Shown here: piece by piece, positions 14,954-60,240 of the stretch | Layout: the number at the start of each line of letters is the position of its first letter | Numbering within the stretch: the first letter of the stretch is position 1 | Assembly (NCBI RefSeq): GCF_020745735.1 | Contig: NC_083435.1 | Coordinates: 37,039,090 to 37,103,089 of the forward strand | DNA from: Hemiscyllium ocellatum | Taxonomy: Eukaryota | DNA: 64,000 nt | Direction: 5' to 3' | Notes under the pieces: model-generated | Databases searched by the model: none | The model's input: only the letters and a program-made list of their open reading frames with translations | Told to the model about the DNA's origin: nothing | Made by a program: the position numbers and the translations under genes

Positions 14954-14973
14954 TCAATCACCCTCAGCACTGA
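14954..14973 (-). CDS. Gene B last coding exon (I)SAEGD-stop
   Basis: TTAG acceptor, phase 1, stop TGA at 14954-14956 and a GTGAGT donor after 14942. Gene A has (I)NAEGD-TAA at the same position. The polypyrimidine tract is weak. Confidence 0.5.
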
Positions 14974-17900
14974 CTAACCACATTCACACAGCACAGTGCA
15001 GAAGGAATTAAGGGTGAAGGAGTGAGGGAGAGGGAGTACGGAATGGGAAAATAGGGAGTGAGGATTGGATGGAGAGGTTGTGGGGGTTGGAGTTGAGGAA
15101 GAGAAGGATGAGAGAGTCATGAAGGATAAGAGAGTCATGAAGAACTGAACCGTGAGGAAACTGATGAGTGTCCCATCCAGGAGAATGTAACTCTACACCT
15201 TCCAATCTCTCTCCCATCATTCCCAACAGTCTGTCCCCTCAGTCACTTACTGGGAGCTGTTGTGTAGGTCCCACTTGGGGAACCTGCAGAAACAAAATAA
15301 ATGTCCATTAGAATGAGGAATAATTCATTCTCAGAGAGTGAGAACACAACAACTGTGAGGGGATGGAGATTGTGTCAGAAATCCTCATTCCCACGCTCCC
15401 CTCCATCCTTACATTTTATGGAGATTCTGGAGATCTCTCCCACCCCATTGATATTCAGTCAGTGAGGATGTAAGTGTGTGTGATGGGTTTATTGATCAAT
15501 ATTAGACCTGGTCTAGGCCAAAGGATGATCTGACAGGGAACGAGACGGGTTTATACGTTGTATATCTGTGCTGGAATTCAATCAGTTCCATTCCCCACAG
15601 TGCCCTGTACTCCCAGTACTGGAGATTCCCCCGCACTCACTCTGTCCCCTCACTTCCACATTCCCCTCTCTCTGAATCTTACCTCTCCAGGGTCTTTTCC
15701 AGATGATTATTCCGAATATTGCAGCCATTGCAGCGAATAATCCAATCAAAAGTATAAGATGGGAACGTACCACACTGTTTTCTGGGATTTCTGAAACACA
15801 TTGGAATAATATCAGGATTATCTCTGTTCCTGGATCCACTCTCGGTCTGTGTTGATTGGGGACAGTTTTAGTTTAACCCACCCATTGGGAATTGATGGAC
15901 TTGGTTCAATAAATTTTGCATTCCAGATCTCATTGATGGGATCGATGTAATAACTGCACAGAGGATGGTATCCATCACCAAGTCACCCTTTATTTATACC
16001 TGAACAGTCCTTGACTTTAGGACTGACTCTTTCAGAGTCAGGTAGCAGAGTGTCATCATCTCTGACACTTCCCTTTTTATTTGTCAGCCAGGGCTCCCTG
16101 ATTGGGGCTGGATCAATCAGAGAACTCATATTCCCTAAGGTCCTGCTGGCTAGCCTCGTTACAATCACAACTTCCCTCCCACTCTGAGTCTGAGAACATA
16201 GGCCAGCCATTTTCCTTGGAGAGCATCCTGGGGCATTTTAACACTGGGACAGCTTCCTCCATGTTCAGCAGGTAATAACGGTAGCATCGAATGCACAGGA
16301 GTTCGCCTCTTGTGCCAGGAGTGCCTTGGCAGGATTTTATTTTCTTCTTCCAGTGGCAAAGGCATCGATTTGGCTCCTTCCATCATGTCCATCTCAGATT
16401 CTAATCTCACAACAATGCTTGACAGAGATAGTGAACCCCTGGGTTCTGGCAGCCTTTCTGACTGCTCAGAGGGGCAGGGTATGTTTTGCTCCTGCATTGT
16501 TTACAAATTTCCAACTTTCAAACGGACCTTGTGCTGGTTCAGGACCATCGCACCTGCCTGACCTTTCCACATCACTGGTCCCGATCTCACATGGAGAATG
16601 CCTCTTTCCCATACAGGGCCATTTCCATCATTCTTACACCAAACCTCCTCCCCTTACTGTGATGATACTGCGACTTTAAGAGGTTATTTTGTCCTGTTTC
16701 TTTTTAAAGAGACGTTGTAAGGCTGAGATGTCGAGCTGTCTGGTTGGAAAGCCAATGAAGTAACTGGCTTACAAGGCCTTGGGTTTTTTAATGCAGGAAC
16801 AATAGAAGCAGCCTGGATGGGAGTATCCAGCTCTCGGACCGAGATTTCTAGTTTGTAGTTTTTTAGCTTTGCGATTCAGCATCAGTTACTTATGGAGTCT
16901 CAACAGGCTCGGAATTACAGTAAATGTCTCCTTGCTGCTCCTCTCTCTGAGCTTTCTCTTGAAGCTTTTCCTTCTGGCTTGCTGCAGTTACCTGTGAGAC
17001 AAATCTATTTTCTGAACTTTGCCAAGGGGTGTGTTTATGGGATGTTACTACATTGAACCATTAATTAGTAATCGGTACTGTGTCTGTTGATTTCTTAATT
17101 TTTCTGATAGATTTATGGTATTCTAAATTCGTCTTTCTTTAGTTATATTTTAATTCTACCATTTCGATAAAGTGTGTTTTGCCTAAAGCTGAGTAGTGTG
17201 ACCAATCGAATTGCATCTGGAACACAGCACTTTACATTTGCCTTTAAAATAAGATAAAGTTAGGCCCCAGGCTTCCTTCTTAAAATATTTTGCAGGGGTC
17301 TGGTCTGATCCTTAATTCCCTGTATTAAACAGTTTCTTTTATTTCGCGGAGACTTGTGTCCAGCATTGGTGTTCCTGAGGCCATTACACCCCACCCCCAC
17401 AGGTCCGGGAAGATCAGATTCAACCTGGTGCAGAGTCTTCTACCCATCAGCAACTCTGCTGGTCCCAACTCTGCTGTTGCATGTGGGGTGATCCCATAAT
17501 CAAATAAGAACCATGATACCTTGGTAACTATCAAGAGGGTCGGCTGTTTTTCAAGCCAGCCTCTAAAGTTTGGACTGCTTTTTCTGCCAGGCCATTCAAT
17601 GTTGGGTGGTATGAAGCTGTCCTTACCTGAAGAATCTCAAAACATTTTAAAAACATGACAAAATTTCTGTCTTGTAAATTGTGGTCTGTTCCTTGTGCTA
17701 CCTGGGAGGCTTTATCGTGCTACTCCAGAGGCTTTAAACTAGTAAGGGGATGACTCAAATCAAAGTAACAGTGAGTAAAGAGAAAGGGCTGAGGCTGGTA
17801 CAGCTCTAAGGGGAACAGCTCAAATCGTCAAAACAGGCAAGAGCTTGGCAGTGACCAAGGTCAGAATGATAAACTGCATTTACTGCAATGTAAGAGGTCT

Positions 17901-20900
17901 GTCAGGGAAGGCAGATGAACTTAGGGCATGGTTGGGAACATGGGACTAGGGTATCACTGCTATTACAGAGGTATAGCTAAGGGACGGACTGGATTGGTAT
18001 CTCAATGTTCCAAGGTATAGATGCTATAGGAAAGATAGAAAGGGGGGATAAGAGAGGAGGACAAGATTTTCATTCAGGATAACATTACAGCTGTACTTAG
18101 GGAGGCATACATTGGGAGATTGACCAGTGAAGTTATATTGGTGGAACTGAGAAATAAGGAGCAGATGATCACCTGGTTGAGATTGTATTATAGCCCCCAG
18201 TAGGCAGCAGGAAATTGAAAACCGAATGTGTAAGGAGATCTCATATCTGTGAGAATATTCGGATGGTAACAGTAGATTTTAATTTCCAAACATAGACTAG
18301 GGCTGTCACTGTGTTAAGGGCTTGGATTGGGAGGAAGTTGTTAAGTATGTCCAAGAAAACGTTCTTCTTCAATATGTGGATGGACCGACTGGAGAAGGAG
18401 TAATACTTGAACTTCTGTTGGGAACAATTGTAGGGCAAGTGAATGAGGTGTCCAGGGGGAGCATTGTGGTGCAAGTGATCATAACTCTATTAGTTTTAAA
18501 GTAGTGATGGAAAAGGATAGAACTGATCAAAAAGGTAAAGTTCTAAATTGGAGTAAGGCTCATTTGGACAGTATCAGACAGGAACTTGCAAAAGATGATT
18601 GGAGGGAGGCTATTTGCAGGTAAAGGGATGAATGGGAAGTGGGAAGCCTTTTAGAAGAAGATAATGAGGGTCCAGAGACAGTATATTCCTGTTAGTGTGA
18701 AGTATTACAAAGTCAAAAGCCTGTCTGTTCACTTTAAAGTAGAAAGTGTTTTCTGAAGTTTGAAGTAAACTTCAAGCGCAGGCTCAGCTGCCTGAATGGA
18801 AAGACTGGGAGACGAGCTGTTCCAAAATAGATACATGCAGCAACTGGCTGTGAAATAGATACCTGCAGTTCCCCTTACACCCAGCCCCAGACCCGAAGAA
18901 GGGTTACACCTGAAGTGTTAGCTTCTCCACCTCCTGATGCTGCCTGGCCTGCTGTGTTCTTCCAGCCTCCTGCCTGTCTACCCTGAGTTTTGCTGCTGTT
19001 TTGACACCAACGCGAATTTAACTGATTGGTTTAAATTGTGCCGAGGATACTAAAAACCCAATTGAGTTTGAGTTTATTGTTTTGTCACCAGGAAACCAAT
19101 CAAATTATAAGAATTTACTGTGTCATGGAGGCTATAAAACATGGGAGTTTTGAAAATTGGTCAGAAAGCAACTGCCATTGATCCACTGAGCAACTACCCA
19201 TCTGACATCTTGCTCTCAAAGAAATTAGAAACATTCTCTATCAAAGGTACCTTTGCATGTGAAACATCCTCGCAGTAACAAAGAAAGAAAACAACCCCCA
19301 GGGAGATCTGCAGGGGGAAGATTGAAGACACCGAAGAAGATAGAGAGTATGTGGTCTTGAGATTAGGTTAATGTAATGTTTAATAAGTGTGTTATTGGAA
19401 TAGCTTTTATTTGTAGAGTTGGGGTCAGATCATAAGAAGTTAAGAGAAGTGGGGCAAGGGGGTTTGGATATGTGAATTTTTTTTGGTTTAATGTTCACTA
19501 TCAGAGTTATTCTTTTTACGTAACAGAGGGGTTTGACCACTGCATGATAATAGAAGGACAAGGCTGATCGATGTAGGAAATGCTGTAAGACTTGAGAAAT
19601 TGAAGTTCTGGTCAAGAAAAAGAAAGAGGCATTTATCAGGTATAGACAGCAGGGATTGAGTAAATCCCAAGAAGTGTATAAGGGCAGCTGGAGTATCCTT
19701 AAGAGGGAAATCAGGAGGACAAAAAGAGAACATGAGACAGCTTTAGCAAATGCAGTTAAGGAGAATCCAAAGAGACTCTAAACGTACATTTCAGCAAAAG
19801 AGTAAATAGAGAATAGGGCACCTTAAAGATCAATGTGGCTGTCTATGTGTGGAACCATAGAGATCAGTCAGATACTAATCACATATTTTGTGTCAGTACG
19901 TATCGTGGAGAAGGACATGGAAGCTCGGGAACTTGGGAAAATAAATAGTGATGGCTTGAAAACAGTGCACATTACAGAAGAGGAGGTACTGAGGATTAAA
20001 ATGCACAATGGTAGATAAATCCCCAGGACCTGATCAGGTGGTACCCAGAATTCTGTGGGAAGCTAGGGAAGAGGTTGCTGCGTACCTAGCTCAGATGTTT
20101 GGATCATCAATAACCAAGGGAGAGGTGCCAGAAGACTGGAGGGTGGCTAATGTGGTGCCACTATTTAAGAAAGGCTGTAATGAAAAGCTAGGGAACTATA
20201 GACCAATGAGCCATACGTCAGTGGTGGGTACATAGTTGGAGGAGATTCTGAGGAATAGGACTCATATACATTTGGAAAGCAAGGACTGATTAGAGATAGT
20301 CAACATGGCTTTGTGCGTGGGAAATTGTGTCTCTATAACTTGACTGAGTTTTTTGAAGAGGTAATAAAGAAGATTGGTGAAGGTAGAGGGGTAGATGTTG
20401 TCCATATGGACTTCAGCAAAGTGTTTGACCAAGTTCTGCATGTAGACTGGTTAGTAAGGTTCGATCACATGGGACCCAGAAGAAGCTAGCTAACTGAATA
20501 TAAAACTTGGCTTCAAGGTGGGAAACAAAGGTTGGTCTAAGAGGGTTGCTTTTTGGACCGAAGCCTGTGACCAGTGGTGTGCCACAAGGATCGGTGCTGG
20601 CTCCATTGCTTTTCATCATTTATATAACTCAGTTGCAGATATGGGCGGAAAAATGGTCGATGGAGTTTAATCCAGGTAATTGTGAGGTGCTGTGCTTTGG
20701 GAGATCACATGTTAAGGAAAAGGATACAGTTAATGGCAGGACTCGGAACAGCATTGATAGACAGAAGGATCTTGAGGTTCAAGTCTATAGCTCCCTGAAA
20801 GTGATCACCCAAGTAGATACGGTGGTAAAGAAGGCGTTTGGCATCTTGCCTTCATTGGTCAGGGTCAAAGAGTGTGGCACTGGAAAAGCACAGCCAGTCA

Positions 20901-21376
20901 GGCAGCATCTGAGGTGCAGGAGAACCGATGTTTCGACCGTAAGCTCTTCATCAGGAATGAGGCTTGTGGCCCAAGATAAATGGGAGGGGGGTGGGGTGGG
21001 GTTGGGTGAGGGGAAGGCAGCTGGGAATGCAATAGGTAGATGGTGGGGGTAAAGATGATAGGTCGAAGAGGAGGGTGAAGTGGATCGGTGGGAAGGAAGA
21101 TGGACAGGTGGGACAGTTCAAGAGGGCGGTGCTGAGTTGGAAGGTTTCTTCTGGGATTTAGGTGTGGGGAGGGAAAATGAGGAAACTGGTGAAATCCACA
21201 AAGATCCCGTGTGGTTGAAGGGTCCCAAGGTGGAAGATGAGACGTTCTTCCTCCAGGTATCGGGTGGTTAGGGTTTGGCGGTGGAGGAGGCCCAGGGACG
21301 TGCATGTCCTTGGTAGAGTGAGAGGGGGAGTTAAAGTGTTCACCCACAGGGTGGGGTGTGTGTGTGCGTGTGTGCG

Positions 21377-21411
<35 letters not shown>

Positions 21412-24400: not shown

Positions 24401-25058
24401 ATGCCGCATTATTTTCAGAAACTGGGCCCAGTCCTTGATCGCAGGATTGATGAGTCAAGTTTCCCAAACAAATGCTTCCCTGACTGAAAGGTGCCTGTTG
24501 TGAGCAAGTTTCTTCAGGATCGTGCTTTACCTCATTGCCCCTGAAATAACCCTACAGAAGCTAGCATTCACTCACCAAGCCACTCGTTATTTACACATGA
24601 CCTGTTCTTGGCATTAGTAGCACCCCATTCAGAGTCAGCTGCCAGACCCTCAATACCTCTGACACTCACCCTTTTTTAATGTCAGTCAGGACTCCCTGAT
24701 TGGATCAGGTTAACGGCCCAATCAGGGACCTCCTATTGACGCGGTGCAGCTGGCTGACCTTGGTATAATCACTACAGGAATAATCTGGTGTAGGAATCCA
24801 GGACAAGGGAGATCCATCTTCAAATGAGAGTGAAACCATTTAGGAGGGAAATCAAAAAGCACTACCTCAGAAATTCGCTGATGGAAATCTGGAGTTTTCT
24901 AACCAAATTGCTGTGAGCGCTGAGGATCAATTGAATATTTCCAGCCTGAGATCAGGAGGGTTTTGTTGGGGAAGAGCAGCAAAACACATGGAGCAGGAAT
25001 GGGTAAAGGGAGTGAGGGACAGATCAGAGCAACCTCAATGAATGGTGGAATAGACACA

Positions 25059-25099
<41 letters not shown>

Positions 25100-28000
25100 G
25101 TCCCTTACCCCACTGATAGAGCTGGGCCTCTGCCAGGCTGCTGTGTTCAATTTGACAGGAGTATTGATCCTCATCCCCAGCATTGATCTCAATCTCTTTC
25201 TGGATCTGATGGGTCCCATCGTGGTTCGGTCGTACCCCTGAGGAATATGTCTCAGACATGACCTCTCTGTTCCTTAGCCAGGTCACCTCGATGTCTGCAG
25301 GATAAAACCCAGTGACCAGGCAGGAGAGAGTGAGCGGCTTGTCCTGACCATTGGGCTCCCTCCTGGAGATGTACACTTCAGGCTGAACTGTGATGGGAAA
25401 GGGGGAAAACACAAACAATAGACAGACACTGAATGGAATGGGAGAACGGTTTCATAGATCAGTGAGGTTAGATCAGAACATGGAACAGAACTGAAATACA
25501 TACCTTTCCTTCCAAAATACTGCTTTCCAGCTTCCAGATATCTCTTTAAATGCTGAACAAATCTTTGCTCCAGACGTGTTTCCCAATCTTTGTTCCAGGA
25601 TTGATCAGCATTCCATTTCTCTTTAGTCTTTACTGCATTGTGATTGGTTGCGATCCATCTCATTCTATCTGGATCTAAGCTGAGGTAATCCTTTCCATCA
25701 AATCCAACTCGCATCGATCTCTTAATAGAGCCGTCATCAGTGACCTCGGCAATTGCTATCCATTGAAATGTGTGAATTCCTATCGGTGATCAAACAGGAA
25801 ATAGTATTAAATTGTTTGCATAAAATGACAATCACTCTGATCTGAGGGGAAACACAATCTAGTAATGGGTAGAATCAGGGATTACTGTCCAGTACTAAAT
25901 GATATCAGGGGTCAGTGCTGGGGGATGGACTGAGTGGAGTGACCCAGGGGTCAGTGCTGGGGGATGGACTGACTGGAGTGAACCAAAGGTCAGTGCTGGG
26001 GAATGGACTGACTGGAGTGACCCAGAGATTAGTGTTGGGAGATGGACTGAGTGGATCATTCATTCGATCATGAACCATCTCTTGATCTTCATTAGTGTGA
26101 CACAACTTTATAAATATCTCAGTCAGAATAGGGAAAAGGAATAGAGTAACACTCTGCAAATCTCCTGTTCAAATTGTACTCCATATGGAATGCTGAAATG
26201 TTACAGGAGACAGTATAACTCAGGCCAGGGCACTGCCTGTCACTCATTGGAAAGAAAAAGAATAAAATTAGACTAGTTTTTAAAAAGTAAGTTTCCAGAT
26301 CTCAGGGCATACTAAAGTGTAATACAGTTCATTGATTTTCATAATTGTTTTTAAAAGGAGGAAATGTTGGAGATATTTTGCACACAGGAAGGCTCCTACA
26401 AGCTGCAAATGATGGTCATTATAGTTTGGTACCGGCCAAAGATAACTTCCCTGCTCTTCTTCAAATGTTCATCTACATAAAGCCAACGGGGACTCTGTTC
26501 AGCATCTCATCTGACAGACAGCAACTTCAACAGCACAGCATTCTGTAAAGCCTGAACTGGCATGTTCAGTTTAATTGTTGTATTAATATCCTGGGGTAGG
26601 CTTTGTACCTACAACCTTCTGATGCAGAATCTAGAGGGGTACCATCTGCACCATATTCAACATTACTCTTCAGTGAGTGACCCTGAATGGTGATCCTGGG
26701 GAATGGAGTAGGAAGCTCGAAAGGAGACAGAGGGAGAACAGAGTCTCATTGAAAATGGTGAAAACCTGTAATAAAAATGGATTTATACAGGAAACACAGA
26801 AAGCTAGCACACAAGGGCAGCAGGTAACCAGAAGGGGCATGAACTGTTGTCCCTTGTATCAAGGGGTTAGAGTATAAGTGTAGGGAAGTCTTAATATAAT
26901 GGTACAAGATGCTGGTGAGACCACATCTGCAGTACTGAGAGCAGTTTTATTCTCTTATTTAAGGAAAAGTAATATTTCATTTCAGGCAGTTCAGAGAAGA
27001 TTCACTAGGAGGATCCCTGGTGTGGAGGGATTGTCATATGAGCAAAGGCTAAACAATACTGACCAAGTTGATAGATGAAATAAGGGCTGTTGATATCATA
27101 TACATGGACTTTAGAAAGGCATTTGATAAGGTTCCGCATGGTAGACTGATGGAGAAAGTGAAGTCACATGGTGTACAGGGTGTTCTAGCTAGGTGGATAA
27201 AGAAACTGGTTGAGCAACAGCAGACAGAGAGTAGTAGTTGAAGGGAGTTTCTCGAAATGGAGAAAGGTGACCAGTGGTGTTCCACAGGGGTCAGTGCTGG
27301 GGTCACTGTTGTTTGTGATATACATAAACGATCTGGGAGAGAGCACTGCTGGTATGATCAGCAAATTTGTAGATGACACAAAGATTGGTGGAGTAGCAGA
27401 AAGCATAAGAGACTGTCAGAGAATACAGGAGGATATAGATAGACTGGAGAGTTGGGCGGAAAAGTGGCAGATGGCTTTCAATCCAGACAATGTGAGGTGA
27501 TACATTTAGGTAAGATTAATTCTAGAGTGAATTATACAATGAAAGGAAAAGCCTTGGGAAAAGTTGATGGGCAGAGAGATATCTGGGAGTGCAGGTCCAT
27601 TGTACCCTGAAGGTTGCTGCACAGGTGGATAGTGGTCAAGGAGGCATACAGTATGCTTGCCTTCATCGGACAGCGTATTGAGTATAAGAGCTGGCAGGTC
27701 ATGTTAACATTGTACACGACATTGGTTCAGCTGCATTTAGAATACTGTGTACAGTTCTGGTCACCACATTACCAAAAGGAAGTGGACACTTTGGAGAGGG
27801 TGCAGAGAAGGTTGAAGAGGATGTTACCTGGTATGGAAGGTGCTAGCTATGAAGAGAGGCTGAGTAAGTTAGGTTTATTTTCACTAGAAAAAAGGAGCTT
27901 ATGGGGGGAACCTGATTGAGGTTTATAAAATTATGAAAGAGACAAGCTTTTTCCCAGGGAGAAGGATTCAATAACAAGAGGTCACACTCTCAGGGTGAGA

Positions 28001-31000
28001 GGTGGAAAGTTTAAGGGGGATACATGTGGCAAGTACATCACACAGAGAGTGGTGGGTGTTTGGAACGTGTTGCCAGCAGAGGTGGTAGAGGCAGGCACGG
28101 TAGATTCATTTAAGATGCGACTGGACAAATGCATGAGGAAGTGGGGAGCAGAGGGATACAGATGCTTAGGAATTGACCGACAGGTTTAGACAGTACATTT
28201 GGATCAGCTCAGGCTTAGAATGCCGAAGGGCCTGTTCCTGGGCTGTAAATTTTCTTTGTTTTTTGTTCTTCGTATGGGAGTCTATTTACTGGAGTTTCGA
28301 AGGATGAGAGGTGATCCCATTGAAACATATCAGATTCTGAAGGGGCTGGACAGGGTAAATGCTGAGAGAATGTTTTTCCTCATGGGAGAGTCTAGGCTCA
28401 GAGGGCACAGACTCAGAATAAAGGGGCGCCCATTTAAAACTGAGATGAGGAGGAGATGAGGAGGATTGATAGTCCTTGCCAGAGAGAGCTGTGGGGAACA
28501 CATCCTTTGCATGTTTAAGGCTAAGGTCAGAGGTCACATGACACCAGGTTATGGTCCAGCAGGTTTATTTGAAATCACAAGCTTTCGAAGCGTTGCTCCC
28601 TCATCAGGCAAAAATTCAAATTGTGATTCTAGATAAACCTGCTGAACTGTAGCCTGGTGCCACGTAACTTTGTCCACCCCAGTCCAATCATATTTTAAGG
28701 CTGAGACGGAGAAATTTTGGATCGATCGGGGAATCGTGAGTTTGCGGAGAAAGGAAAGTGAATGTGAGGAATGTCGGATCAGCCATGATCCCATTGAATG
28801 AGGGAGCAGGTTGGACAATTCGAATGGCCTACTCCTGTTCCTATTTCTTACACAGAGAGAGAGATCAGACAGACAGTGAGAAAATAATCCGAATTGGAGA
28901 AATGGAAGCCCAGCAGCTCAGTGGTTAGCACTGTTGATTCACAGCATCAGGGACCCAGGTTCAATCCTAGCCTCAGGTGACTGTCCATATGGAGTTTACA
29001 CGTTCTCCCTGTGTCTGCATTCTCTGGGTGCTCCAGTTTCTTCCCACAGTCCAAAGGTATGCAGGTTAGTGGATTGACCATGCTAAATTACCCATAATGT
29101 CTCAGGACGTGCAGGCTCAGTGGGTTAGCCATGAAAAATGCGGAGTTACAGGAATGGAGTGGATGGGATGTTCTTTGGGAGGGTCAATATGGACTCAAGT
29201 GGCCTGCTTCCACATTGTAGGAATTCTATGAAATTCCATGTCCTGAACTTACCAGATGTCCGATTTGTACTTTTCATCATTGTATTCAGATTCTCCTTTG
29301 CCATTCCCGATAGTGTATTTGCGATAGCTGTGAGATATTGCCAGTATTCTGCATCAAAATAATCCACCATGAACTGCTGCCTGGGGACCATCCGACCAAT
29401 ATTAGTGTCATGATAATTGAGTTGAACCCCTTTGACTATCGCAATGTTAGTTACCTCCGGAAAATCCTTAATGCCAGAGACTGCCGTGTAGATCACAGTC
29501 AGTGAGTCGGTGTCTGCAAATATCAGTTAAAGAAGGGGTTAATAAACATTTCCACAGTATTGAAGACTTATGCCCCAGAAATTCCTACACACCTAACCAA
29601 GATGTTCCAGTACAGCTCAACGTGACAATGTGAAAAATTGCTCAGGTATGACCTGTACACAAAAAGGCAGGACAAATCCAACCCAGTGAATTAACCACCC
29701 CATCAGCCTGTTCTCGATCATCAATAAATTGATGGATAGTGTCACCAACAGTGACATCAAACAGCAATAACCTGCACAGTGACGTCAGGTTTAGCTTCCC
29801 CCAGGACCACATTACAGCCTTGGTTCAAACATGGACAAAACAGCTGATTCTAGCGATGAGGTGAGAGACAACCCTTGATATCAGTATCACATTTGACCGA
29901 GTGTGGCATCAAGGAGCCCAGCAAAACTGGAATCAATGAGAACCAGTTTTCTGTTGGTTGGATTCATACTTGGCGCATGGGAAAATGGTTGCAATTGTTG
30001 GAGGTCAGGTGTAGCAGCTCCAGGACATCTTGCCAGCAGCTTCTCAGGCACTTTCCCTCCATTATAATGTCAGAAATAAGAATGTTTGCCGATGACGGCA
30101 CAACATTCAGCATTGTTCCGACTCCTCAAATATTGAAACAGTCCATTTCCAAATGGAGCAACACCTGGATAATATTCAGGCTTTGGCTGGTAAGTAGCAA
30201 GTTGTATTGGAACCAAACACAGGTCTCATGTACTGACCAACTGAAATAGGTGAGAATGCAATGCATCCCTTTAATATTCAATGGTGTTACCATCACTGAA
30301 TTGTTCAGAAACTGAAGTGGATTAACCATGTGTACTGTAAGCAAGAGCAGGTCAGATTTTAGGAATTCTGCAGTAAGTAATTCACCTCTTCATTCCCCAA
30401 AAACTAGCAATGTCATCATTCATTCTTTATTTAAACCAATGCACAGCAGTGTGTACCATCTCCAAGATTCACTGCAGAAACTTAACACAACTTCTCTGAC
30501 AGCACCTTCCAAACGTGTGACATCTACCATCTACCTTCAAGGAGGACAACAGCAAGAGATGCAAACGTACACTAACCCCTGGAAATTCCCCTCCAGGCCA
30601 CACACCATCATTTGGAAATATATCACCATTCCATAACATTTGCTGGTTCATAATCCTGGAACTCCCTGTTTAACAGCACTGGGTGTGTATCCAAACCCCA
30701 CAGCTCGCCAGCACCCTCGCAAGGGCATGTGTTCCCTTTGGAATGATCAATAGAAAGGGGGCAAAATTTTAACGAGAGAGGCAGGAAGTTTCGAAGGGAT
30801 TTGAGGAAAAGTCTTTTTCACTGAGAGGGAGTTGGGCTGGAATGCACTGCCTGGGGAGGGGAGTTGAGGTGGGAACAGTCACAACAGATCAAAATTATTT
30901 GGGTGAACCCTTGATGAGCACATTCATGGTTCCGGGCCGTTCACTTGGAAGTGGGACGAATGTAGATTTAGTGTATTGCTGGCAGTACAGACTCGATAGG

Positions 31001-32004
31001 TTGAGGAGTCGCTTCTTTACTGGATGGATATATAACTCCAACTCAGGATGAGTAATAATTGCGAGCCCAGCCAGCAACACCCACCCCAATTGCATCCATC
31101 TCTAAATTTTAATAGCAACTTGCACAGACATAGTCGATCACAAACCTTGGGTCTTTCACTAACCTGCAACAGTGACCTATGACACAACCGGTATATCATT
31201 GTCCTGGACAAGTAACCTAGAATGCATTGAAGAAAGATATTGAGGCAACCTTCCTGACCAGGGAGCATCCGGAGTGAGGAATTCAGAACAACCCAAGGGC
31301 AGTTCTGTGGTTTATCGCCAAAACCAGAAAAGATGCGGTGTGAATGAATCCGGATTGAAATGAAGAGAAACAGGAATATTTGGGAGGATGAAGTGTGAGA
31401 CCATGGGGGACAGTCACTGTGTGAACAGTCTCTCTGTCAAACAGGGGGATGGACAATCCCGAGCAGGATCCCCACTGTCCTTCACTGAGCTTTTTAATCA
31501 GCCCTTTATACACGGCCTGTAGGATGTTGGTGTCTGAGATAACCCGGCCTATTCAACCATGAGGGCATCACAGCTGGGCCTGGGCTGGGTTAAACATGGA
31601 GTCTCCTTCTCCTCCCCACAGTGTTTACAAGACTTTAGACCAGGAATGATGAAGCTGTTTGGCTTCTCCCAATCGATGTGAAAATTAAAATTCTCCATTG
31701 GAACCATTTCCCATTTGCTCGGAGCTTCTCTGATCTCGGGGTTTCTACATCCTGCTGTCAGGAGACCTGGACACAAATCCCATCAGAGTCTCCCAGACTG
31801 TGCTGCCTTCAATGTGTAAAAGATCAGGCTGGCTGTATAACAGGCGGCTGATCAAACATCCCCCATTTCAAACTCTCCCCAAGAGACTCACATTCACCCC
31901 AGACACAGAGAGAGAGAGAGAGAGAGAATGGAAAGCTGAATTCTGTACTTACCGGGAGAGACCCGGGAAAAGCACAGGGAGATGGAGAGAAGGATCAGCA
32001 ACAT
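14954..32004 (-). CDS. Gene B: complete non-classical MHC class I heavy chain, about 342 aa. join(32004-31953, 29513-29253, 25779-25504, 25387-25109, 15790-15683, 15283-15251, 14973-14954)
   Basis: All exons are open, all introns are GT-AG and phase 1, and the domain order is leader-a1-a2-a3-TM-cyt. The last exon is less certain. Confidence 0.88.
15251..15283 (-). CDS. Gene B cytoplasmic exon GSPSGTYTTAP
   Basis: 33 bp, TTTCTGCAG acceptor and GTAAGT donor, phase 1/1; identical in gene A. Confidence 0.8.
15683..15790 (-). CDS. Gene B connecting peptide / transmembrane exon EIPENSVVRSHLILLIGLFAAMAAIFGIIIWKRPWR
   Basis: 108 bp, TTTCAG acceptor and GTAAGA donor, phase 1/1; hydrophobic helix followed by a basic stop-transfer segment. 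Confidence 0.88.
16716..17315 (+). mobile_element. LTR of a second LTR family (related copies at 35307-35844 and, inverted, 44964-45597)
   Basis: TGT start; shares blocks (GTGTTTTGC...AAGCTGAGT...TGCCTTTAAAA...GGTCTGG) with the other two copies. Confidence 0.6.
17720..20865 (+). mobile_element. CR1 LINE ORF2, degenerate, with an internal insertion at about 18.7-19.55 kb
   Basis: Endonuclease start CIYCNVRGLSGKADELRAW, KSPGPDQ, GVPQGSVLAPLLF; many stops and frameshifts. Confidence 0.8.
20866..21350 (-). mobile_element. Penelope-like element 3' end (GIY-YIG C-terminus plus terminal repeat)
   Basis: EHFNSPSHS motif and GATGCTGCCTGACTGGCTGTGCTTTTCCAG terminus. Confidence 0.7.
21353..21411 (+). 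repeat. (TG)n microsatellite
   Basis: Read directly from the sequence. Confidence 0.95.
25055..25095 (+). repeat. (CA)n microsatellite just inside the intron after gene B alpha3
   Basis: Read directly from the sequence. Confidence 0.95.
25109..25387 (-). CDS. Gene B MHC class I alpha3 (IgC1) exon
   Basis: 279 bp, phase 1/1. VQPEVYISRR...LSCLVTGFYPADIEVTWLRN...RPNHDGTHQ...YSCQIEHSSL has the canonical C1-set Cys/Trp/Cys pattern. Confidence 0.97.
25504..25779 (-). CDS. Gene B MHC class I alpha2 exon (no cysteines)
   Basis: 276 bp, open, phase 1/1. GIHTFQWIAIAEVTDDGSIKRSMRVGFDGKDYLSLD...TKEKWN...LEQRFVQHLKRYLEAGK. Confidence 0.95.
25905..26065 (+). repeat. 39-bp minisatellite, about 4 units
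   Basis: GTCAGTGCTGGGGGATGGACTGA.TGGAGTGACCCAGGG units at 25911, 25950, 25989 and about 26028. Confidence 0.85.
26370..26655 (+). mobile_element. Ancient DeuSINE-like (SacSINE1/AmnSINE1-type) relic
   Basis: TGCTCTTCTTCAAA...CAGCATCTCATCTGACAGACAGCAAC...ACCTACAACCTTCTGA resembles the Deu-domain and tail as recalled; not verified by search. Confidence 0.4.
26800..28850 (+). mobile_element. CR1 LINE 3' fragments (two or more), with a Penelope-type hairpin fragment at about 28530-28690
   Basis: GVPQGSVLGSLLF...FVDDTK, LEYCVQFWSPHY and CR1 3' tails. Confidence 0.85.
28905..29220 (+). mobile_element. HE1-like SINE (diverged) next to the gene B alpha1 donor
   Basis: CAGTGGTTAGCACTG...GGTTCAATCC boxes and the HE1 core. 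Confidence 0.75.
29253..29513 (-). CDS. Gene B MHC class I alpha1 exon
   Basis: 261 bp, open, TTTGCAG acceptor and GTAAGT donor. DTDSLTVIYTAVSGIKDFPEVT...PRQQFM...EYW...NRTS, with the N86-equivalent glycosylation sequon. Confidence 0.95.
29560..30700 (+). mobile_element. Degenerate CR1/L2-like LINE RT fragment (same family as 60.8-64 kb)
   Basis: KMFQYSS and RMFADD-like motifs; recognisably similar to 63.0-64.0 kb. Confidence 0.6.
31953..32004 (-). CDS. Gene B leader exon MLLILLSISLCFSRVSP
   Basis: 52 bp ending in a phase-1 G|GTAAGT donor; joins in frame to alpha1 as D-T-D-S-L. Confidence 0.88.
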
Positions 32005-32027: not shown

Positions 32028-32279
32028 CCAATCAGTGATTGGGAATAAAACACAGAGGGGAAAACTGCTATTGAGAGTCTGGAAGAACAAAACACTTACT
32101 TTGACTCCACTTGCTGAGCTGCAGGTCATTTCCTGAACTTCAAGCTGCAGAAGCAGAGAGTCAATGATTGGTCCCAGTCTCAGTAAAATACCCACTAAAG
32201 GGATGAACAGATTTCTGTCATCAGTTACCAGGGAGATCAGACTCAGACAGGTTGTGTTACCCGCAGGGAAACAGAAACT
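32028..32279 (-). promoter_or_regulatory. Gene B class I-type promoter: ISRE, S-like box, X1X2, mutated Y box and CCAAT boxes
   Basis: AGTTTCTGTTTCCC (ISRE consensus) at 32266-32279, AACCT 15 bp upstream of X, X1X2-like CCCTGGTAACTGATGAC at 32217-32233, AGTGG in place of ATTGG about 20 bp downstream, CCAAT at 32167-32171 and a CCAAT palindrome at 32028-32042. Confidence 0.7.
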
Positions 32280-35306: not shown

Positions 35307-35844
35307 TGTAAAGGCAGAGGTGCCAATATGTCTGCAAATGGTTACTATAAACAATGACAGGGGAGTAGCCAGTTCTCCCAGCTCAGGTCATTTTCTAGTT
35401 TGGTTTGTTTTCAGCAGGCAGTCAGAACTTGCTGGTAGCAGAGAAGCTGCTACAATTAAAAAAAAGGTTCCATGCTTCAACAGATATTTCTTGCCTGACT
35501 CTTCTCTCTGCAATCTCTCCTGCCTGTAAGAACCTGGGTTTGAAATTCCTTTTTGCCAAGAGATATGTTTGTGGAGCATCACAGGGACTGGAACAGCTCC
35601 TTAGTTAAGTTGCTATCTCAGGTCAGATGGGTTTTCAAATCGCTGTTATTCCGAATTCTGTTTTATTTTGTTCATGTTTCAACTGTAGGGTGTAAATAAG
35701 TTGTGTTTTGCTTCAAGCTGAGTGGTTTGACCAGCTGCATCACTCCTGGAATATTCACTTCACATCTGCCTTTAAAACAGGAAAATGTTAGGGTCTGGGT
35801 GACCTTCTTAAAGTGTTTTGTGGGGCCTGGCCTGGTCCAGAACA
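35307..35844 (+). mobile_element. LTR (TGT...ACA) abutting the psi alpha1 fragment
   Basis: Homologous to 16716-17315. Confidence 0.65.
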
Positions 35845-35979
35845 CTGATTGAAAGATTGTGCCATGAATTGCTGCCTGGCAATTGTCCTTTGAATATTAC
35901 TGACATGATAATTAACTATAACTCCATTCACCATTGCAACCTTTGTTACAACAGAAAAATCTTCAGTGCCAGAAATTGC
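35845..35979 (-). pseudogene. MHC class I alpha1 exon fragment of dead paralogue psi
   Basis: Translates to AISGTEDFSVVTKVAMVNGVIVNYHVSNIQRTIARQQFMAQSFNQ, colinear with gene B AVSGIKDFPEVTNIAIVKGVQLNYHDTNIGRMVPRQQFMVDYFDA. It has no acceptor and is cut by an LTR. Confidence 0.85.
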
Positions 35980-36690
35980 TGGAACAGTAACCGGGGGGCA
36001 CCCAGTCTATCACTAACCTGGAACAGTAACCAGGGCACACCTGGTCTATCACTAACTTGGAATGGTAAACTGGGACACACCCGGTCTATCATTAACCTGT
36101 GGCAGTAACCTGGCAACACACAGTCTATCACGAAACTGGAACAGTAACCAGCGATACACCTGGTCTAACACTAACCTGGAACAGTAACCTGGGACACAAT
36201 CAGTCTATCACTAACCTGGAGCAGTAACCGAGGATACACCTGGTCTATCACTAACCTGGAAGAGTAACCTGGGAACACACAGTCTATCACTAACCTGGAG
36301 CAGTAACCTAAGACACACCTATTTTATTACTAACCTGGAATAATAATCGGGGACAGATCTGGTCTATCACTAACCTAAATAGATCTCTTCATGCTGTTAC
36401 TAATCAAGGACAATCTGCCACTTTTCACATGGACCTTACGTTATTAGAATACATCAATGAATTTTAACCCATTCACCGAATCCCTGTGATGTTTGACACA
36501 CCCAGTCTATCACTAACCTGGAACAATAACCAGGGGGAACCCGGTCAATCACTAACCTGGAACAGTAATAAGGGACACACTCAATCTATCACCAACCTGA
36601 AATAGTAACCAGGGCACACCCAGTCTATCACTAACCTGGTACAGTAACCTGGGACACACCTGGTCTATCTCTAACCTAAATCGATCTCCC
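35979..36690 (+). repeat. 39-40-bp minisatellite in two blocks (about 10 and about 5 units)
   Basis: Unit approximately GTCTATCACTAACCTGGAACAGTAACCAGGGCACACCTG. The same repeat occurs at 60655-60760. Confidence 0.92.
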
Positions 36691-42785: not shown

Positions 42786-42991
42786 ATGTGAAAATGTTAC
42801 AAATAAATCTAGAGAATCTAAATCTAAATAAATTGAAGTCAGAGAAAAGTTGACATGTCACTTACTGAATCATGAAGAAGCTGCACCAGAGACTTCAAAA
42901 GCTGAGAAAATAAAAACAGAACATGAGAAATTATATCAAATATAAAATAAGACAGTGTGAGATATTCTCTATCACTCACTGGACCCAGGAT

Positions 42992-43606: not shown

Positions 43607-43639
43607 TGGGAGCTGTTGTGTAGGTCCCACTTGGGGAAC
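43607..43639 (-). CDS. Gene A cytoplasmic exon GSPSGTYTTAP
   Basis: 33/33 nt identical to gene B. Confidence 0.78.
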
Positions 43640-44069: not shown

Positions 44070-44186
44070 CTCTCCGTGGCCATTTCCAGATGATTATTCC
44101 GACTATCCCGAAAATAACAGCCAATGGAATGACTATTTTAATGAGACTTCCAAGATGGGAATGCGGCCAATTGCTTTTCTGATTTT
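44070..44186 (-). CDS. Gene A TM exon ENQKSNWPHSHLGSLIKIVIPLAVIFGIVGIIIWKWPRR
   Basis: 117 bp, AG/GT boundaries, phase 1/1. Confidence 0.85.
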
Positions 44187-46112: not shown

Positions 46113-46414
46113 NNNNNNNNNNNNNNNNNNNNNNNNNNNNNNNNNNNNNNNNNNNNNNNNNNNNNNNNNNNNNNNNNNNNNNNNNNNNNNNNNNNNNNNN
46201 NNNNNNNNNNNNNNNNNNNNNNNNNNNNNNNNNNNNNNNNNNNNNNNNNNNNNNNNNNNNNNNNNNNNNNNNNNNNNNNNNNNNNNNNNNNNNNNNNNNN
46301 NNNNNNNNNNNNNNNNNNNNNNNNNNNNNNNNNNNNNNNNNNNNNNNNNNNNNNNNNNNNNNNNNNNNNNNNNNNNNNNNNNNNNNNNNNNNNNNNNNNN
46401 NNNNNNNNNNNNNN
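46113..46414. other. Assembly gap covering the gene A alpha3 donor
   Basis: Run of N bases. Confidence 1.
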
Positions 46415-46687
46415 GATAGAGCTTGCCCTCTGCCAGGCTGCTGTGTTCAATTTGACAGGAGTATTGATCCTCATCCCCAGCATTGATCTCAATCTCTTTC
46501 TGGATCTGATGGGTCCCATCGTGGTTCGGTCGAACCCCCGAGGATTGGGTCTCAGACATGACCTCTCCATTCCTTAGCCAGGTCACCTCGATGTCTACAG
46601 GATAAAACCCAGTGACCAGGCAGGAGAGAGTGAGCGGCTTGTCCTGACCATTGGGCTCCCTCCTGGAGATGAACACTTCAGGCTGAA
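46415..46687 (-). CDS. Gene A alpha3 exon (last few bases lie in the gap)
   Basis: VQPEVFISRR...SCLVTGFYPVDIEVTW...YSCQIEHSSLAEGKLY. Confidence 0.93.
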
Positions 46688-46803
46688 CTGTGATGGGAAA
46701 GGGGGAAAACACAAACAACAGACAGACACTGAATGGAATGGGAGAACGGTTTCATAGATCAGTGAGGTTAGATCAGAACATGGAACAAAACTGAAATACA
46801 CAC

Positions 46804-47079
46804 CTTTCCTTGTGAAATATTCCTTTCCAGCTTTTAGATAGCTCTTTAAAGATTTAACATATCCTTTTTCCAGATGTATTTTCCAGTAGTTGTTCCAGGA
46901 ATTATCAGAATCCCATTTCTCTTTAGTCATCACTGCAATAGGATTGGATGCGATCCATCTCATTCTGTCTTGTTCTAAACTGATAAAGTCCTTTCCATCA
47001 AATCAAAATCTCATCGATCTCTTAATGCTGCCGTCATCACTGACCTCAACAGCAATTATCTGTTGAAAAATGTGAACTC
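46804..47079 (-). pseudogene. Gene A alpha2 exon with an in-frame TGA (Gly in gene B) and no cysteines
   Basis: ...AGA TCG ATG AGA TTT TGA TTT GAT GGA AAG..., with intact splice sites. Confidence 0.9.
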
Positions 47080-54189: not shown

Positions 54190-56735
54190 ACCTGTCGCAA
54201 AGTTTTTACTACAGTTGTTATGGGGGATTTCAACATGCAGGTAGACTGGGAGAATCAGAATCATCCTGGACCCCAAGAAAGAGAGTTTGTGGAGTACCTC
54301 CGAGATGGATTCTTAGAACAGCTTGTACTGGAACCTACAAGGGAAAAGGCAATTCTGGATCTGGTTTTGTGAAATGAACCGGATTTGATCAGGGACCTCG
54401 AAGTGAAGGAATTATAAGGAAGTAGTGACCATAATATGATAAGTTTTAATCTGCAATTTGAGAGGGAGAAGGGAGAATTGGACGTTTCAGTATTACAGTT
54501 GAACAAAGGGAACTATGGAGCTCTGAGGGAGGAGCTGGCCAAAGTTCAATGGCTCAATACTCTAGCAGGGATAGCAGTGGAACAACAATGGCAGGTACTT
54601 CTTGCAGAAAGTGCAGGATCAGTTCATTCCAAAAAGGAAGGAAGATCCTAAGGGGAGGCAGAGAGGGCCATGGCTGACGAGGGAAGTTAAGGGAAGATAA
54701 AAGAGAAGAAGTATAACATAGCAAAGATGAACAGGAAGCTGGAGGACTGGGAAATGTTTAAAAAGCAACTGAGGATAACTAAAAACGCAATACGCGGAGA
54801 AAAAAATGAGGGATGAAGGCAAACTGGCCAAAAATATAAAGGAGGATAGTAAAAGCTTTTTTAGGTATGTGGAAGAAAAAAAATGGTTAAGATTAACATT
54901 TGGCCCTTAAAGACAGAAATGGGTGAATTCATTATGGGGAACAAGGAAATGGCAGAAGAGTTGAATGGTACTTTGGATCTGTCCTCACTGGGGAAGACAC
55001 AAGCAATGTCCCAGATGTAATAGTGGCTGAAGGACCGAGGGTAATGGATGAACTGAAGGGAATTTATATTGGGCAGGAAATTGTGTTGGAGAGACTGTTA
55101 GGTCTGAAGGCTGATAAGTCCCCGGGACCTGATGGTCTGCATCCCAGGGTACTTAAGGAGGTGGCTCTAGAAATCATGGACGCATTGGTAATCATTTTCC
55201 AATGTTCTATAGATTTAGGATCAGTTCCTGCAGATTGGAGGGTGGCTAATGTCGTCCCACTTTTCAAGAAAGGAGGGAGAGAGAAAACAGGGAATTATAG
55301 ACTGGTTAGCCTGATGTCAGTGGTAGGAAAGATGCTGGAGTCAATTATAAAAGATGAAATTATGACTCATTTGGATAGCAGTGACAGGATAGGTCAGAGA
55401 CAGCATGGATTTACGAAGGGGAAATTGTGCTTGACTAATTTTCTGGAATTTTTTGAGGATGTAACCATGAAGATGGACAAGGGAGAGCCAGTGGATGTAG
55501 TGTACCTGAACTTTCAGAAAGCCTTTGATAAAGTCCCACATAGGAGATTAATGAGCAAAATTAGGGCACATGATACTGGGGGCAAAATACTGACTTGGAT
55601 TGAAAATTGGCTGGCTGACAAGAAGCAAAGAGTAATGATAAACGGGTCCCTTTCGGAATGGCAGGCGATGACCAGTGGGGTACCACAAGGTTCAGTGCTG
55701 AGACTGCTGCTGTTTACGATATACATTAATAATATAGATGAAGGCACTAATATTAGCAATTTTGCTGATGACACAAAGCTGGGTGGCAGGGTGAAATGTG
55801 AGGAGGATGTTAGGAGAATACAGGGTGACTTGGACAGGCTAGGTGAGTGGACAGATGCATGGCAGATGCAGTTTAATGTGGATAAATGTGTGGTTATCCA
55901 CCTTGGTGGCAAGAACAGGAAGGCAGATTACTATCTAAATGGAGTCAAGTTAGGTAAAGGGGCAGTACAATGAGATCTGGGAGTTCTTGTGTATCAGTCA
56001 ATGAAATCAAGCATGCAGGTACAGCCGGCAACAATGAAGAAAGCTACTGGCATGCTGGCCTTCATAACAAGAGGAATTGAGTACAGGAGCAGAGAGGTCC
56101 TTCTGCAGCTGTACAAGGCCCTGGTGAGACTAAACCTGGAGAATTGCGTGCAGTTTTGGTCTCCAAATTTGAGCAAGAACATTCTGGCTATTGAGGGAGT
56201 GCAGCGTAGGTTCACGAGGTCAATTCCCAGAATGGCTGGACTATCTCATGTTGAAAGATTGGAGTGACTGGGCTTGTATACACTTGATGGTGAGAGAAGG
56301 TATACAAGAAGGATGAGAGGGGATCTGATTGAGATGTGTAAGATTATTAAAGGATTGGTCACTCTGGAGGCAGGAAGCATCTTTCAGCTGATAGGTGAGT
56401 CCAGAGCCAGAGGGCAAAGTTTAAAAATAAGGGGTAGGTCATTTAGAACAGAGTTGAGGAGAAACTTCTTCACCCAGAGAGTGGTGGGTGTATGGAATGC
56501 CCTCCCCCAGAGGGCAGTGGAGGCCAAGTCTCTGGATACTTTCAAGAAAGAGATGGATAGAGAGATAGACAGTGGAATCAAGGGATATGGGGATAAGGCA
56601 GGAACAGGATACTGATTGTGGATGATCAGCCATGATCACAATGAATGGTGGTGCTGGCCTGAAGAATAAAATGCCCTACTCCAGCACTCATGTCTATTGA
56701 TTATTGTCTATTGTCTATTGATTATTGTCTATTGA
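54190..56735 (+). mobile_element. CR1 LINE ORF2 (endonuclease end plus RT) with a tandem CTATTG-type tail
   Basis: ORF 55023-55973 with KSPGPDGLHPRVLKE, FQKAFDKVPH, GVPQGS and FADDTK. Confidence 0.9.
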
Positions 56736-59610: not shown

Positions 59611-59979
59611 CTCTATGTTACTGCATAGGGCCAGGTTTGAAGAAACAGCGATACTTAGATAATAGGAAGAACCAAGTTGCGTGACATTGTCTGGTGTTAG
59701 GGCTCCCATGACTGAGTGGCACAAAATGGCTGCTGGCTGCCCATGGTTAATACAGGAGAACATGGCTGACAGTAGTTACAGCACTTTGGACAATGTTTGC
59801 TTCACGTAGCCTTCACATGTAGGACAATAGTAACTCTGTATAATCAAGGTTACTGACTGAGAGAGAATGAGCAGCTGCAGTTGCTTTCTTAGATAAGAAC
59901 ATTTCACACTAATTAGTTGTCTCTCTTGAATCATTTAATCAATCTGTTACAACAGAAACATCAATCAGCCAGATCTTAC

Positions 59980-60240
59980 CAGACGTCTGGTTTGACCTCT
60001 TCATTATTGTACTCAGAATTTCCTTCACCTTGTTTGCATGTATGTTCACCCGCTCTGTGATATAATCCCAGAAATTCACATCGAAGAATTCTGCCATGAA
60101 CTGCTGCCTGGGGATGCACCGTTGGGTTTTACTGTCACATGAACCGATTATAACTCCATTGACTGTTGCACTGTTTGTAACCTCAGGAAAACCCTTCAAT
60201 CCAGCAACAATTGTGTAAATCACAGTGAATGCGTTAGTCT
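59980..60240 (-). CDS. Gene A alpha1 exon (open, with two extra cysteines)
   Basis: 261 bp, TTTTATAG acceptor and GTAAGA donor. ETNAFTVIYTIVAGLKGFPEVT...SCDSKTQRCIPRQQFM...NFW...RSNQTS. Confidence 0.93.

Follow-up and report, generated by a model that had tools for sequence, protein, structure and literature searches.

Few features of MHC class I molecules are as strongly conserved as the disulfide bond joining C101 and C164 (HLA numbering) in the alpha2 domain, which is tied to assembly in the peptide-loading complex. A 64,000-nucleotide stretch of the Hemiscyllium ocellatum genome (the window) carries two shark non-classical class I genes in tandem (A and B), as the initial annotation had described, and in-frame translation confirmed that no cysteine is present in alpha2 of either gene. 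This raises the question of whether the missing bond marks a special sub-lineage confined to this array, or is a property of a larger group to which the array belongs. The reading that we regard as very probable is that the window comes from a presumably MHC-linked cluster of the UEA type, in which gene B is intact, gene A is disabled and Cys101 was lost before the family radiated.

Structure of genes A and B

The alpha2 exons of both genes were located on the minus strand, exactly at the coordinates annotated initially (Table 1); frames in the plus-strand reading of the same coordinates were full of stops. The span of the array needed a small adjustment, the coding end of gene B (14833) lying slightly beyond the start given originally (14954). 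Gene B was found to be complete and open, as claimed, with seven exons encoding 346 amino acids, canonical splice sites, and introns with AG/GT borders and in phase 1 throughout. Q96, the FDGKD motif, the N86 sequon (NRT) and both alpha3 cysteines were likewise recovered. Pfam MHC_I matched the alpha2 domain of gene B with E=1.4e-17 and alpha1, which is 88% identical to that of P0029, only weakly (E=3e-4). The predicted product would comprise a signal peptide, alpha1, alpha2, an Ig-like alpha3, a transmembrane (TM) segment and a short tail.

No protein identical to gene B was found among the retrieved public proteins and cluster members; P0080 and P0099, which have a similar TM exon, were rejected as gene B products, being derived from a paralogue. 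Gene B seems to be an intact family member that the retrieved public protein models lack. It is probably functional, and it is presumably expressed. The intron preceding its TM exon is 9.3 kb long and contains degenerate repeat-like ORFs and repeat insertions, and retroelements fill introns of the array genes.

Table 1 Class I gene features and associated motif located in the window
Feature	Position	Strand	Remarks
Gene B leader exon	31953..32004	-	MLLILLSISLCFSRVSP + 1 base; ATG at 32004, GT donor; matches leaders of P0018 and P0136
Gene B alpha1 exon	29253..29513	-	261 nt; NRT sequon N86; AG/GT borders, phase 1
Gene B alpha2 exon	25504..25779	-	276 nt; no cysteine; A101, F164
Gene B alpha3 exon	25109..25387	-	279 nt; C1-set Ig domain, both cysteines; Pfam E=8.8e-18
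Gene B connecting-peptide/transmembrane exon	15683..15790	-	AG/GT borders; matches TM of P0018/P0029
Gene B cytoplasmic exon 1	15251..15283	-	GSPSGTYTTAP
Gene B last exon	14833..14864	-	TLDVCIPASS, TAA stop
ISRE-like motif AGTTTCTGTTTC	32268..32279	-	About 270 bp upstream of gene B ATG; consensus match only
Gene A alpha1 exon	59980..60240	-	261 nt
Gene A alpha2 exon	46804..47079	-	No cysteine; V101, Y164; in-frame TGA 47005..47003
Gene A alpha3 exon, readable part	46415..46687	-	Ends at N-run 46113-46414
Gene A transmembrane exon	44070..44186	-	Identical to TM of RefSeq H. ocellatum model P0126
Gene A cytoplasmic exon 1	43607..43639	-	
Gene A last exon	42870..42901	-	FEVSGAASS, TGA stop
Orphan degenerate alpha1-like exon relic	35800..36006	-	Between genes A and B; 12-residue deletion
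Leader exon of third family gene	5442..5493	-	99% identical to gene B leader region

The in-frame TGA in alpha2 of gene A had not been recorded in the initial annotation; the corresponding codon in gene B is GGA. No leader exon of gene A was found upstream within the window (60241-64000). The RefSeq H. ocellatum models P0126 and P0093 correspond to gene A exactly, from the first Met after the TGA, and the gene is represented in RefSeq by an N-truncated H. ocellatum protein only. Its alpha3 is 96% identical to that of gene B at the nucleotide level and readable as far as base 46415, the N-run hiding the end of the exon (two codons and the split base), the donor site and part of the intron that follows. 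In the tree, gene A was sister to P0015, and it is 96% identical to the intact paralogue P0015/P0127, which also carries V101 and Y164. Gene A is probably a pseudogene, a recently disabled member of the family, and is best handled as one.

Loss of the alpha2 cysteines across the family

Positions 101 and 164 were identified by aligning P0018, a close homologue, with chicken BF2, and genes A and B with Cys-bearing shark and ray class I lineages. The residues at 101 and 164 were those annotated initially, A/F for gene B and V/Y for gene A. The family to which the two genes belong comprised more than 75 distinct proteins from 13 shark species (more than 100 RefSeq class I family proteins overall). 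When these were checked for retention of C101, as the initial annotation had suggested, the cysteine was present in none of approximately 75 members, about 85% of which have V. This makes the loss of the disulfide ancient and family-wide, at the sequence level an old trait of the family that is not peculiar to the array, and speaks against a Cys-less sub-lineage particular to it. Outgroup class I lineages retain both alpha2 cysteines. Among about 150 full alpha2 domains, sampled as the nearest representatives within a library of 1.84 billion proteins, both cysteines were kept in 137, and loss of both was seen only in the shark family.

The suggestion that the absence of the bond has been maintained held up: it has persisted over very long times in the intact genes of the 13 species, which include Hexanchiformes and Pristiophoriformes, and this argues for function and against decay. 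That genes A and B are both decaying pseudogenes, their cysteines missing through relaxed constraint, is hardly credible. The premature stop in gene A and the lack of its leader exon in the window would fit such decay, as would the retroelement-filled introns and the failure to find an identical public protein for gene B, but the shark orders diverged only after the cysteine loss, which is common to dozens of intact genes, and gene B has an intact ORF, correct splice junctions and a dN/dS of 0.45-0.48 relative to gene A in each domain. A replacement disulfide elsewhere in alpha1/alpha2 was ruled out by the 22 of 75 members that have no cysteine in these domains and the 18 that have a single one.

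The initial annotation had further taken the array for a sub-lineage of its own without the cysteines, where hydrophobic packing of a small aliphatic side chain at 101 against a large aromatic one at 164 was selected in place of the disulfide. A fixed packing pair of this kind is only partly supported. The combinations A/F in gene B and V/Y in gene A agree with it, and L, F, Y, W, I, V or M occupied position 164 in 55 of 75 members (approximately 73%). Residue 164 was also conserved within orthologue groups, for example as F throughout the old group of gene B (with Stegostoma, Pristiophorus, Cetorhinus and Carcharodon) and as L in a clade of 21 members. Across the family, however, L, F, Y, S, G, D, T, H, W and sometimes a lone C were all observed at this position, with S, G, D, T or H in 15 of 75 members (20%) and a lone Cys in five, and it ranked 30th in variability among the 178 alpha1/alpha2 columns, that is, within the most variable sixth. 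On the tree, 19 to 20 changes were counted at position 164, against four to five at position 101, where V is conserved. Agreement between the two paralogues carries less weight than it first seems to, gene A probably being a pseudogene, although the intact paralogue P0015/P0127 is also V/Y. With the disulfide loss common to the whole family, we consider a packing-pair sub-lineage unlikely.

In the scenario suggested by the tree, Cys101 would have given way to other residues, usually Val, ahead of the radiation of the family in sharks, and the alpha1/alpha2 platform would since have functioned with no conserved disulfide. Val101, on the floor of the sheet, would have remained fixed, and residue 164, untethered on the alpha2 helix, would have become a variable groove-lining position that differs between orthologue groups and is conserved inside each.

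Class I features and predicted fold

Genes A and B are class I genes in which one canonical feature has been lost and the other class I features are present. The MHC_I alpha1/alpha2 domains are followed by a C1-set alpha3, with one exon per domain and phase-1 introns; the alpha3 disulfide (C203-C259) is present, and invariant in the family, and the alpha2 disulfide (C101-C164) is absent. The N86 sequon is NRT in gene B and NQT in gene A, and Q96, G120 and D122, which are beta2-microglobulin (beta2m) contacts, were invariant over 73 aligned sequences. The residues at the peptide-terminus positions were V7, Y59, S84, T143, K146, W147, R159 and Y171 in gene B, and V7, F59, R84, T143, K146, W147, H159 and Y171 in gene A. 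The invariant residues of classical class I molecules are therefore incomplete (Y7 and Y159 lost), the genes are non-classical, and a classical identity was rejected.

An AlphaFold2 model of P0029, a paralogue 91% identical to gene B with the same A101/F164 and modelled instead of gene B itself, gave a confident, ordinary class I fold (pLDDT 93; TM 0.85-0.89 to classical class I structures). Retention of Q96, G120, D122, the N86 sequon and a nearly invariant alpha3 would preserve a beta2m-associated fold, and the family proteins are likely to pair with beta2m. Ligand anchors at the C-terminal end (T143, K146, W147, Y171) were kept, and those at the N-terminal end lost (Y7 to V, Y159 to R or H). 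Because beta2m-type features and C-terminal anchors were kept and N-terminal anchors lost, we infer that the proteins are surface molecules that present ligands or act as receptor ligands, with lineage-specific grooves. The missing bond may affect ligand choice or helix mobility, the initial annotation having proposed a loosened alpha2 helix.

A large and long-lived family without C101-C164 implies that the bond is dispensable for the class I fold, and the natural variants in this family, in which V101 stays the same while 164 differs, are useful for work on groove dynamics and ligand choice. It is conceivable, if rather doubtful, that the whole UEA-type family, a membrane-bound class I lineage of the beta2m type, has folded and worked with an entirely disulfide-free alpha1/alpha2 for hundreds of millions of years and that the freed position 164 became specificity-determining in the groove. 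If this is true, and has not yet been analysed explicitly, the family would constitute a natural experiment on the purpose of the C101-C164 bond, with respect to dependence on chaperones and oxidoreductases, to helix dynamics and to the exchange of ligands.

Assignment to the UEA lineage

UEA, named as the first candidate in the initial annotation, remained the best lineage assignment, and the family is almost certainly the published shark UEA lineage; the name rests on elimination and published descriptions, no protein named UEA having been returned by the searches. UEA has been described as a multicopy, ancient, MHC-linked class Ib family of sharks, and UBA as the other expanded shark class Ib family, derived from UAA and located in its own cluster, with C4 and RXRB as flanking genes (PMC10751288; PMC12562908). 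The genes in the supplement of PMC10751288 are labelled only 'MHC-Ib'.

At least 14 distinct clusters at 90% identity were counted in H. ocellatum, with a similar count in C. punctatum, and genes A and B, the exon relic and the leader of a third gene all lie in the window itself. Family matches in the protein databases came from 13 shark species in six orders and none from rays, the best ray matches (Pristis, Leucoraja) having 32-34% identity and both cysteines, and being placed in the outgroup. Within each species all members lay on one chromosome-size contig, together with other class I lineages. The family formed one clade with a support of 99, apart from the other class I lineages, and was approximately 31% identical to 6lup, a shark class I structure, chicken BF2 scoring higher than 6lup; the low identity and the separate clade agree with an ancient lineage not derived from UAA. 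Whale shark and bamboo shark members occur in the family, and the multicopy, shark-restricted, ancient state, the distance from UAA and the remodelled ligand groove, and presumably also the MHC linkage, are shared with UEA as published (PMC10751288; PMC12562908). No difference from UEA was demonstrated in this comparison by description.

A UBA identity was rejected: UBA is likewise multicopy and, as presumed for the family, MHC-linked in sharks (PMC10751288), but it is described as UAA-derived, whereas the family is too distant from UAA and, unlike UBA-type matches, absent from rays. A UFA or UGA identity was rejected too. These lineages, which are CD1-like, share with the family a non-classical nature and presumably MHC linkage in the same large class Ib cluster (PMC10751288; PMC12562908), but are single or low copy and occur in rays too, and the Cys-bearing outgroup proteins P0113-P0116 are better candidates for these lineages.

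The family could instead be a separate, as yet unnamed shark class Ib lineage, to which the comparison with UEA by published description alone leaves some room. The abstract of Almeida et al. 2021 reportedly describes UEA as lacking conservation of the invariant peptide-terminus residues. T143, K146, W147 and Y171 were kept at approximately 90% in the family, a better conservation of F-pocket residues than that description suggests, which fits it only if 'lacks conservation' means 'not all nine'. Such a lineage is nevertheless distinctly improbable, given that the literature consulted names just two expanded shark class Ib families and UBA, the other one, comes from UAA, yet the family is so far from 6lup; that the family resembles UEA in being multicopy, shark-restricted and on the same chromosome as other class I lineages; and that a RefSeq family of this size is unlikely to have been missed by the surveys of 2021-2023. 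With the family taken as UEA, the missing disulfide characterizes a shark lineage that has already been published. A literature search combining UEA with disulfide or cysteine returned nothing relevant, the defining UEA paper (Almeida et al., J Immunol 2021;207:824) lying outside that search.

Compared with UAA (6lup), the family has the same exon plan, a similar predicted fold (TM 0.83), the N86 sequon, Q96/G120/D122, the alpha3 disulfide and T143/K146/W147/Y171, but differs in its low sequence identity, the absence of the C101-C164 bond, the loss of Y7 and Y159, and its multicopy state with birth-and-death turnover. Xenopus XNC molecules are not known to have lost the alpha2 disulfide, and a functional analogy between UEA and XNC is reportedly drawn in the Almeida et al. 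2021 abstract. XNC/mhc1-uba similarly comprises many divergent non-classical class I genes arranged in tandem, whose grooves differ from member to member (PMC12562908), but its origin is independent of that of the shark family.

Other class I remnants and upstream motifs

The degenerate alpha1-like relic matched alpha1 of gene B with 38% identity (tblastn E=6.6e-13), and the remainder of the third gene lies beyond the window start. Together with genes A and B, the relic and the third leader would complete a birth-and-death tandem array rich in retroelements. A second N-run (34390-34518) lies within a repeat in the intergenic stretch that separates genes A and B, and leaves all class I exons untouched. 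The ISRE-like motif upstream of gene B was the single match in the window, where 0.27 matches are expected by chance (about one per four windows), and is followed by X-box-like and then CCAAT/Y-box-like sequences.

Gene structures in the array

On the plus strand, the frames of both alpha2 exons were stop-ridden and this reading was rejected; on the minus strand both translated as class I alpha2 domains, with zero cysteines as the initial annotation had reported. Gene B exons (see table) were set by reading of the DNA and mapping of close homologues. With AG...GT at all internal borders, phase 1 introns throughout and a stop-free spliced coding sequence of 1041 nt (346 residues), gene B was confirmed as complete and open. 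Its alpha1 and alpha2 domains matched Pfam MHC_I (E=3e-4 and E=1.4e-17, respectively), and alpha3 matched C1-set (E=8.8e-18). No protein identical to gene B was found among those retrieved, so that a public protein model for this gene seems to be missing. An exact match to the ISRE consensus AGTTTCTGTTTC, the sole one in the window, lies at 32268-32279, some 270 bp before the ATG; X-box-like and CCAAT motifs come after it. Since 0.27 ISRE matches are expected by chance, these motifs are no more than a clue to a class I promoter. Right after the alpha3 donor site comes a long (GT)n microsatellite (25040-25105, minus strand), and the 9.3-kb intron between the alpha3 and transmembrane (TM) exons contains repeat ORFs without Pfam matches (17300-24600).

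Gene A is probably a pseudogene. Its alpha2 exon carries an in-frame TGA (47005..47003; GGA in gene B), and a search of the 3.8 kb between alpha1 and the window end gave no leader, whereas those of gene B and of a third gene were readily detected. An N-run (46113-46414) hides the last two codons of alpha3 along with the split base and the donor site. Gene A matches two RefSeq proteins of H. ocellatum, P0126 and P0093 (XP_060706360-64), exactly from the first post-stop methionine through alpha3, TM and tail, which identifies the species; the RefSeq models splice alpha3 to the TM exon across this N-run, which suggests that both flanks belong to the same gene. RefSeq thus annotates an N-truncated product, which cannot be a working class I chain because it has neither signal peptide nor alpha1. 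The two genes had been taken as independent paralogous examples of cysteine loss; both are Cys-less, but only gene B is an intact gene. A further alpha1-like stretch just upstream of gene A alpha1 (60316-60429, minus strand; weak tblastn E of about 0.05-0.3) may be a partial-duplication relic, or chance. Another N-run (34390-34518) falls in an intergenic repeat, clear of every class I exon, and leaves the distance between genes A and B uncertain.

Features of the class I array (window coordinates)
Feature	Position	Strand	Remark
Gene B leader	32004..31953	minus	
Gene B alpha1	29513..29253	minus	
Gene B alpha2	25779..25504	minus	
Gene B alpha3	25387..25109	minus	
Gene B transmembrane	15790..15683	minus	
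Gene B cytoplasmic (two exons)	15283..15251 + 14864..14833	minus	
Gene A alpha1	60240..59980	minus	
Gene A alpha2	47079..46804	minus	
Gene A alpha3, readable part	46687..46415	minus	abuts N-run
Gene A transmembrane	44186..44070	minus	
Gene A cytoplasmic	43639..43607 + 42901..42870	minus	
Orphan alpha1-like exon, degenerate	36006..35800	minus	E=6.6e-13; 12-residue deletion; between genes A and B
Third-gene leader	5493..5442	minus	rest of gene runs off window start
LINE-type ORF, 721 aa	2245-4407	minus	endonuclease + reverse transcriptase
Second RT ORF, LINE-type	54927-55970	plus	
zf-RVT fragment	6957-7670	plus	

Loss of the alpha2 cysteines across the family

The gene B alpha2 query retrieved shark class I proteins at 60-77% identity, and a full-length relative retrieved more than 100 family proteins, from Chiloscyllium and Scyliorhinus (two species each), Hemiscyllium, Rhincodon, Stegostoma, Mustelus, Carcharodon, Cetorhinus, Heterodontus, Heptranchias and Pristiophorus. 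In any one species, a single contig of chromosome size held all members; identity of the best ray proteins was no higher than 32-34%. In a maximum-likelihood tree of 76 family rows and six Cys-bearing class I proteins from other lineages, the family formed one clade (support 99). Gene B grouped with P0029 (H. ocellatum, 91%), P0018 (C. punctatum) and P0136, nested in an old orthologue group including zebra shark, sawshark, basking shark and white shark genes, while gene A was sister to P0015/P0127 (96%) within an expansion limited to Orectolobiformes (carpet sharks).

Alignments to chicken BF2 and to Cys-bearing shark and ray lineages upheld the assignment of positions 101 and 164. Cys101 was absent from all of the approximately 75 family members, other sharks included; V stood at position 101 in about 85%; gene B, P0029 and another family member (P0077) had A, and I or L occurred occasionally. 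Residue 164 was L (about 25 members), F (about 25) or Y (about 10), more rarely S, G, D, T, H or W, with a lone C in a few. No substitute disulfide was found in alpha1/alpha2 of these members, 22 of 75 being wholly Cys-free there (gene B among them) and 18 of 75 having a lone cysteine at mature position 42 as their only one. Gene B alpha2 was also searched against 1.84 billion representative proteins; among the nearest representatives, 137 of approximately 150 complete domains kept both alpha2 cysteines, a handful had lost one, and only members of this shark family had lost both. The reported loss is real and beyond chance, but it is an ancient trait of the entire family, very probably a known shark lineage, and does not mark the array-specific sub-lineage envisaged initially. 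Its proposed maintenance in functional genes is well supported, since the state has persisted across shark orders in dozens of genes that are intact.

An aromatic residue 164 packing against residue 101 had been suggested as a replacement for the disulfide. Position 101 changed 4-5 times on the tree and position 164 19-20 times, the latter ranking 30th in variability among 178 alpha1/alpha2 columns (median column, 10 changes). Inside orthologue groups residue 164 was stable: the group of gene B had F, a clade of 21 members L, one of five members G and a further clade S. Its behaviour is that of a variable position in the groove rather than of an invariant aromatic counterpart to 101.

Four class I-like library matches (P0141, P0147, P0149 and P0213) with the motif LTQI[Y/F/S]P.WL kept Cys101 and had lost Cys164.

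Conserved features and predicted fold

As initially described, gene B has Q96, the N86 sequon and a normal alpha3 with its Cys pair; G120 and D122 are present as well. Apart from the sequon, these residues, together with W60 and W133, were invariant in 73 aligned sequences, and alpha3 was near-invariant throughout the family. Of the classical peptide-terminus residues, T143, K146, W147 and Y171 showed about 90% retention, while Y7 was replaced by V and Y159 by R or H; position 59 was Y or F, and position 84 S in gene B and R in most members. P0029 (residues 19-291), which shares A101/F164 with gene B and is 91% identical to it, was modelled with AlphaFold2 (mean pLDDT 93, pTM 0.81), giving standard class I secondary structure. 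The model is confident and overlays class I structures from chicken, duck, fish, lizard and shark as well as MR1 at TM 0.81-0.89 (31% identity to shark structure 6lup); an ordinary class I fold is therefore predicted without the alpha2 bond.

Lineage assignment

From the 2021 work of Almeida et al., UEA is reportedly shark-restricted, linked to the MHC in both whale shark and bamboo shark, and divided into several sublineages with distinct grooves; these traits all agree with the family.

Two class Ib families are expanded in sharks: UBA, derived from classical UAA and clustered separately near C4 and RXRB, and the more ancient, multicopy UEA, which is found alongside single-copy UDA in the large class Ib cluster adjoining the adaptive MHC; UFA/UGA are CD1-like, single or low copy and also present in rays (PMC10751288; PMC12562908). 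The present family is multicopy, shark-restricted and distant from 6lup, and shares its chromosome with other class I lineages; on these traits UBA, UDA, UFA and UGA were rejected. The family is therefore very probably UEA, matched through published descriptions rather than named UEA sequences. On this assignment the genes and their lineage have already been described, and the missing cysteines would be visible in any published UEA alignment; what a class I platform free of disulfides means biochemically may not have been addressed so far.

Evolution of the array

Array introns and spacers are packed with LINE-type reverse transcriptase/endonuclease ORFs and other repeat ORFs, and no alpha2 or alpha3 remnants were seen near the orphan alpha1-like exon. 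The leader region of the third gene is 97% identical to that of gene B over 461 bp downstream from the exon. Its similarity to gene B ends approximately 30 bp upstream of the ATG (feature span 5442-5523), where LINE-derived sequence begins, and the third gene may for this reason have lost its promoter through insertion.

Nucleotide identity between genes A and B was 66% in alpha1, 78% in alpha2 and 96% in alpha3, and 97% in the alpha2-alpha3 intron (46688-46803 and 25388-25503, respectively), with dN/dS of 0.45-0.48 in each domain. This pattern fits a family with birth-and-death turnover whose alpha3 end has been homogenised; the far greater similarity of intron and alpha3 than of alpha1/alpha2 suggests that the 3' half arose by gene conversion or as a mosaic. 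P0131, an H. ocellatum RefSeq 'uncharacterized protein' of 684 aa, consists of two family class I genes fused head-to-tail and is probably a read-through gene model from the same cluster.
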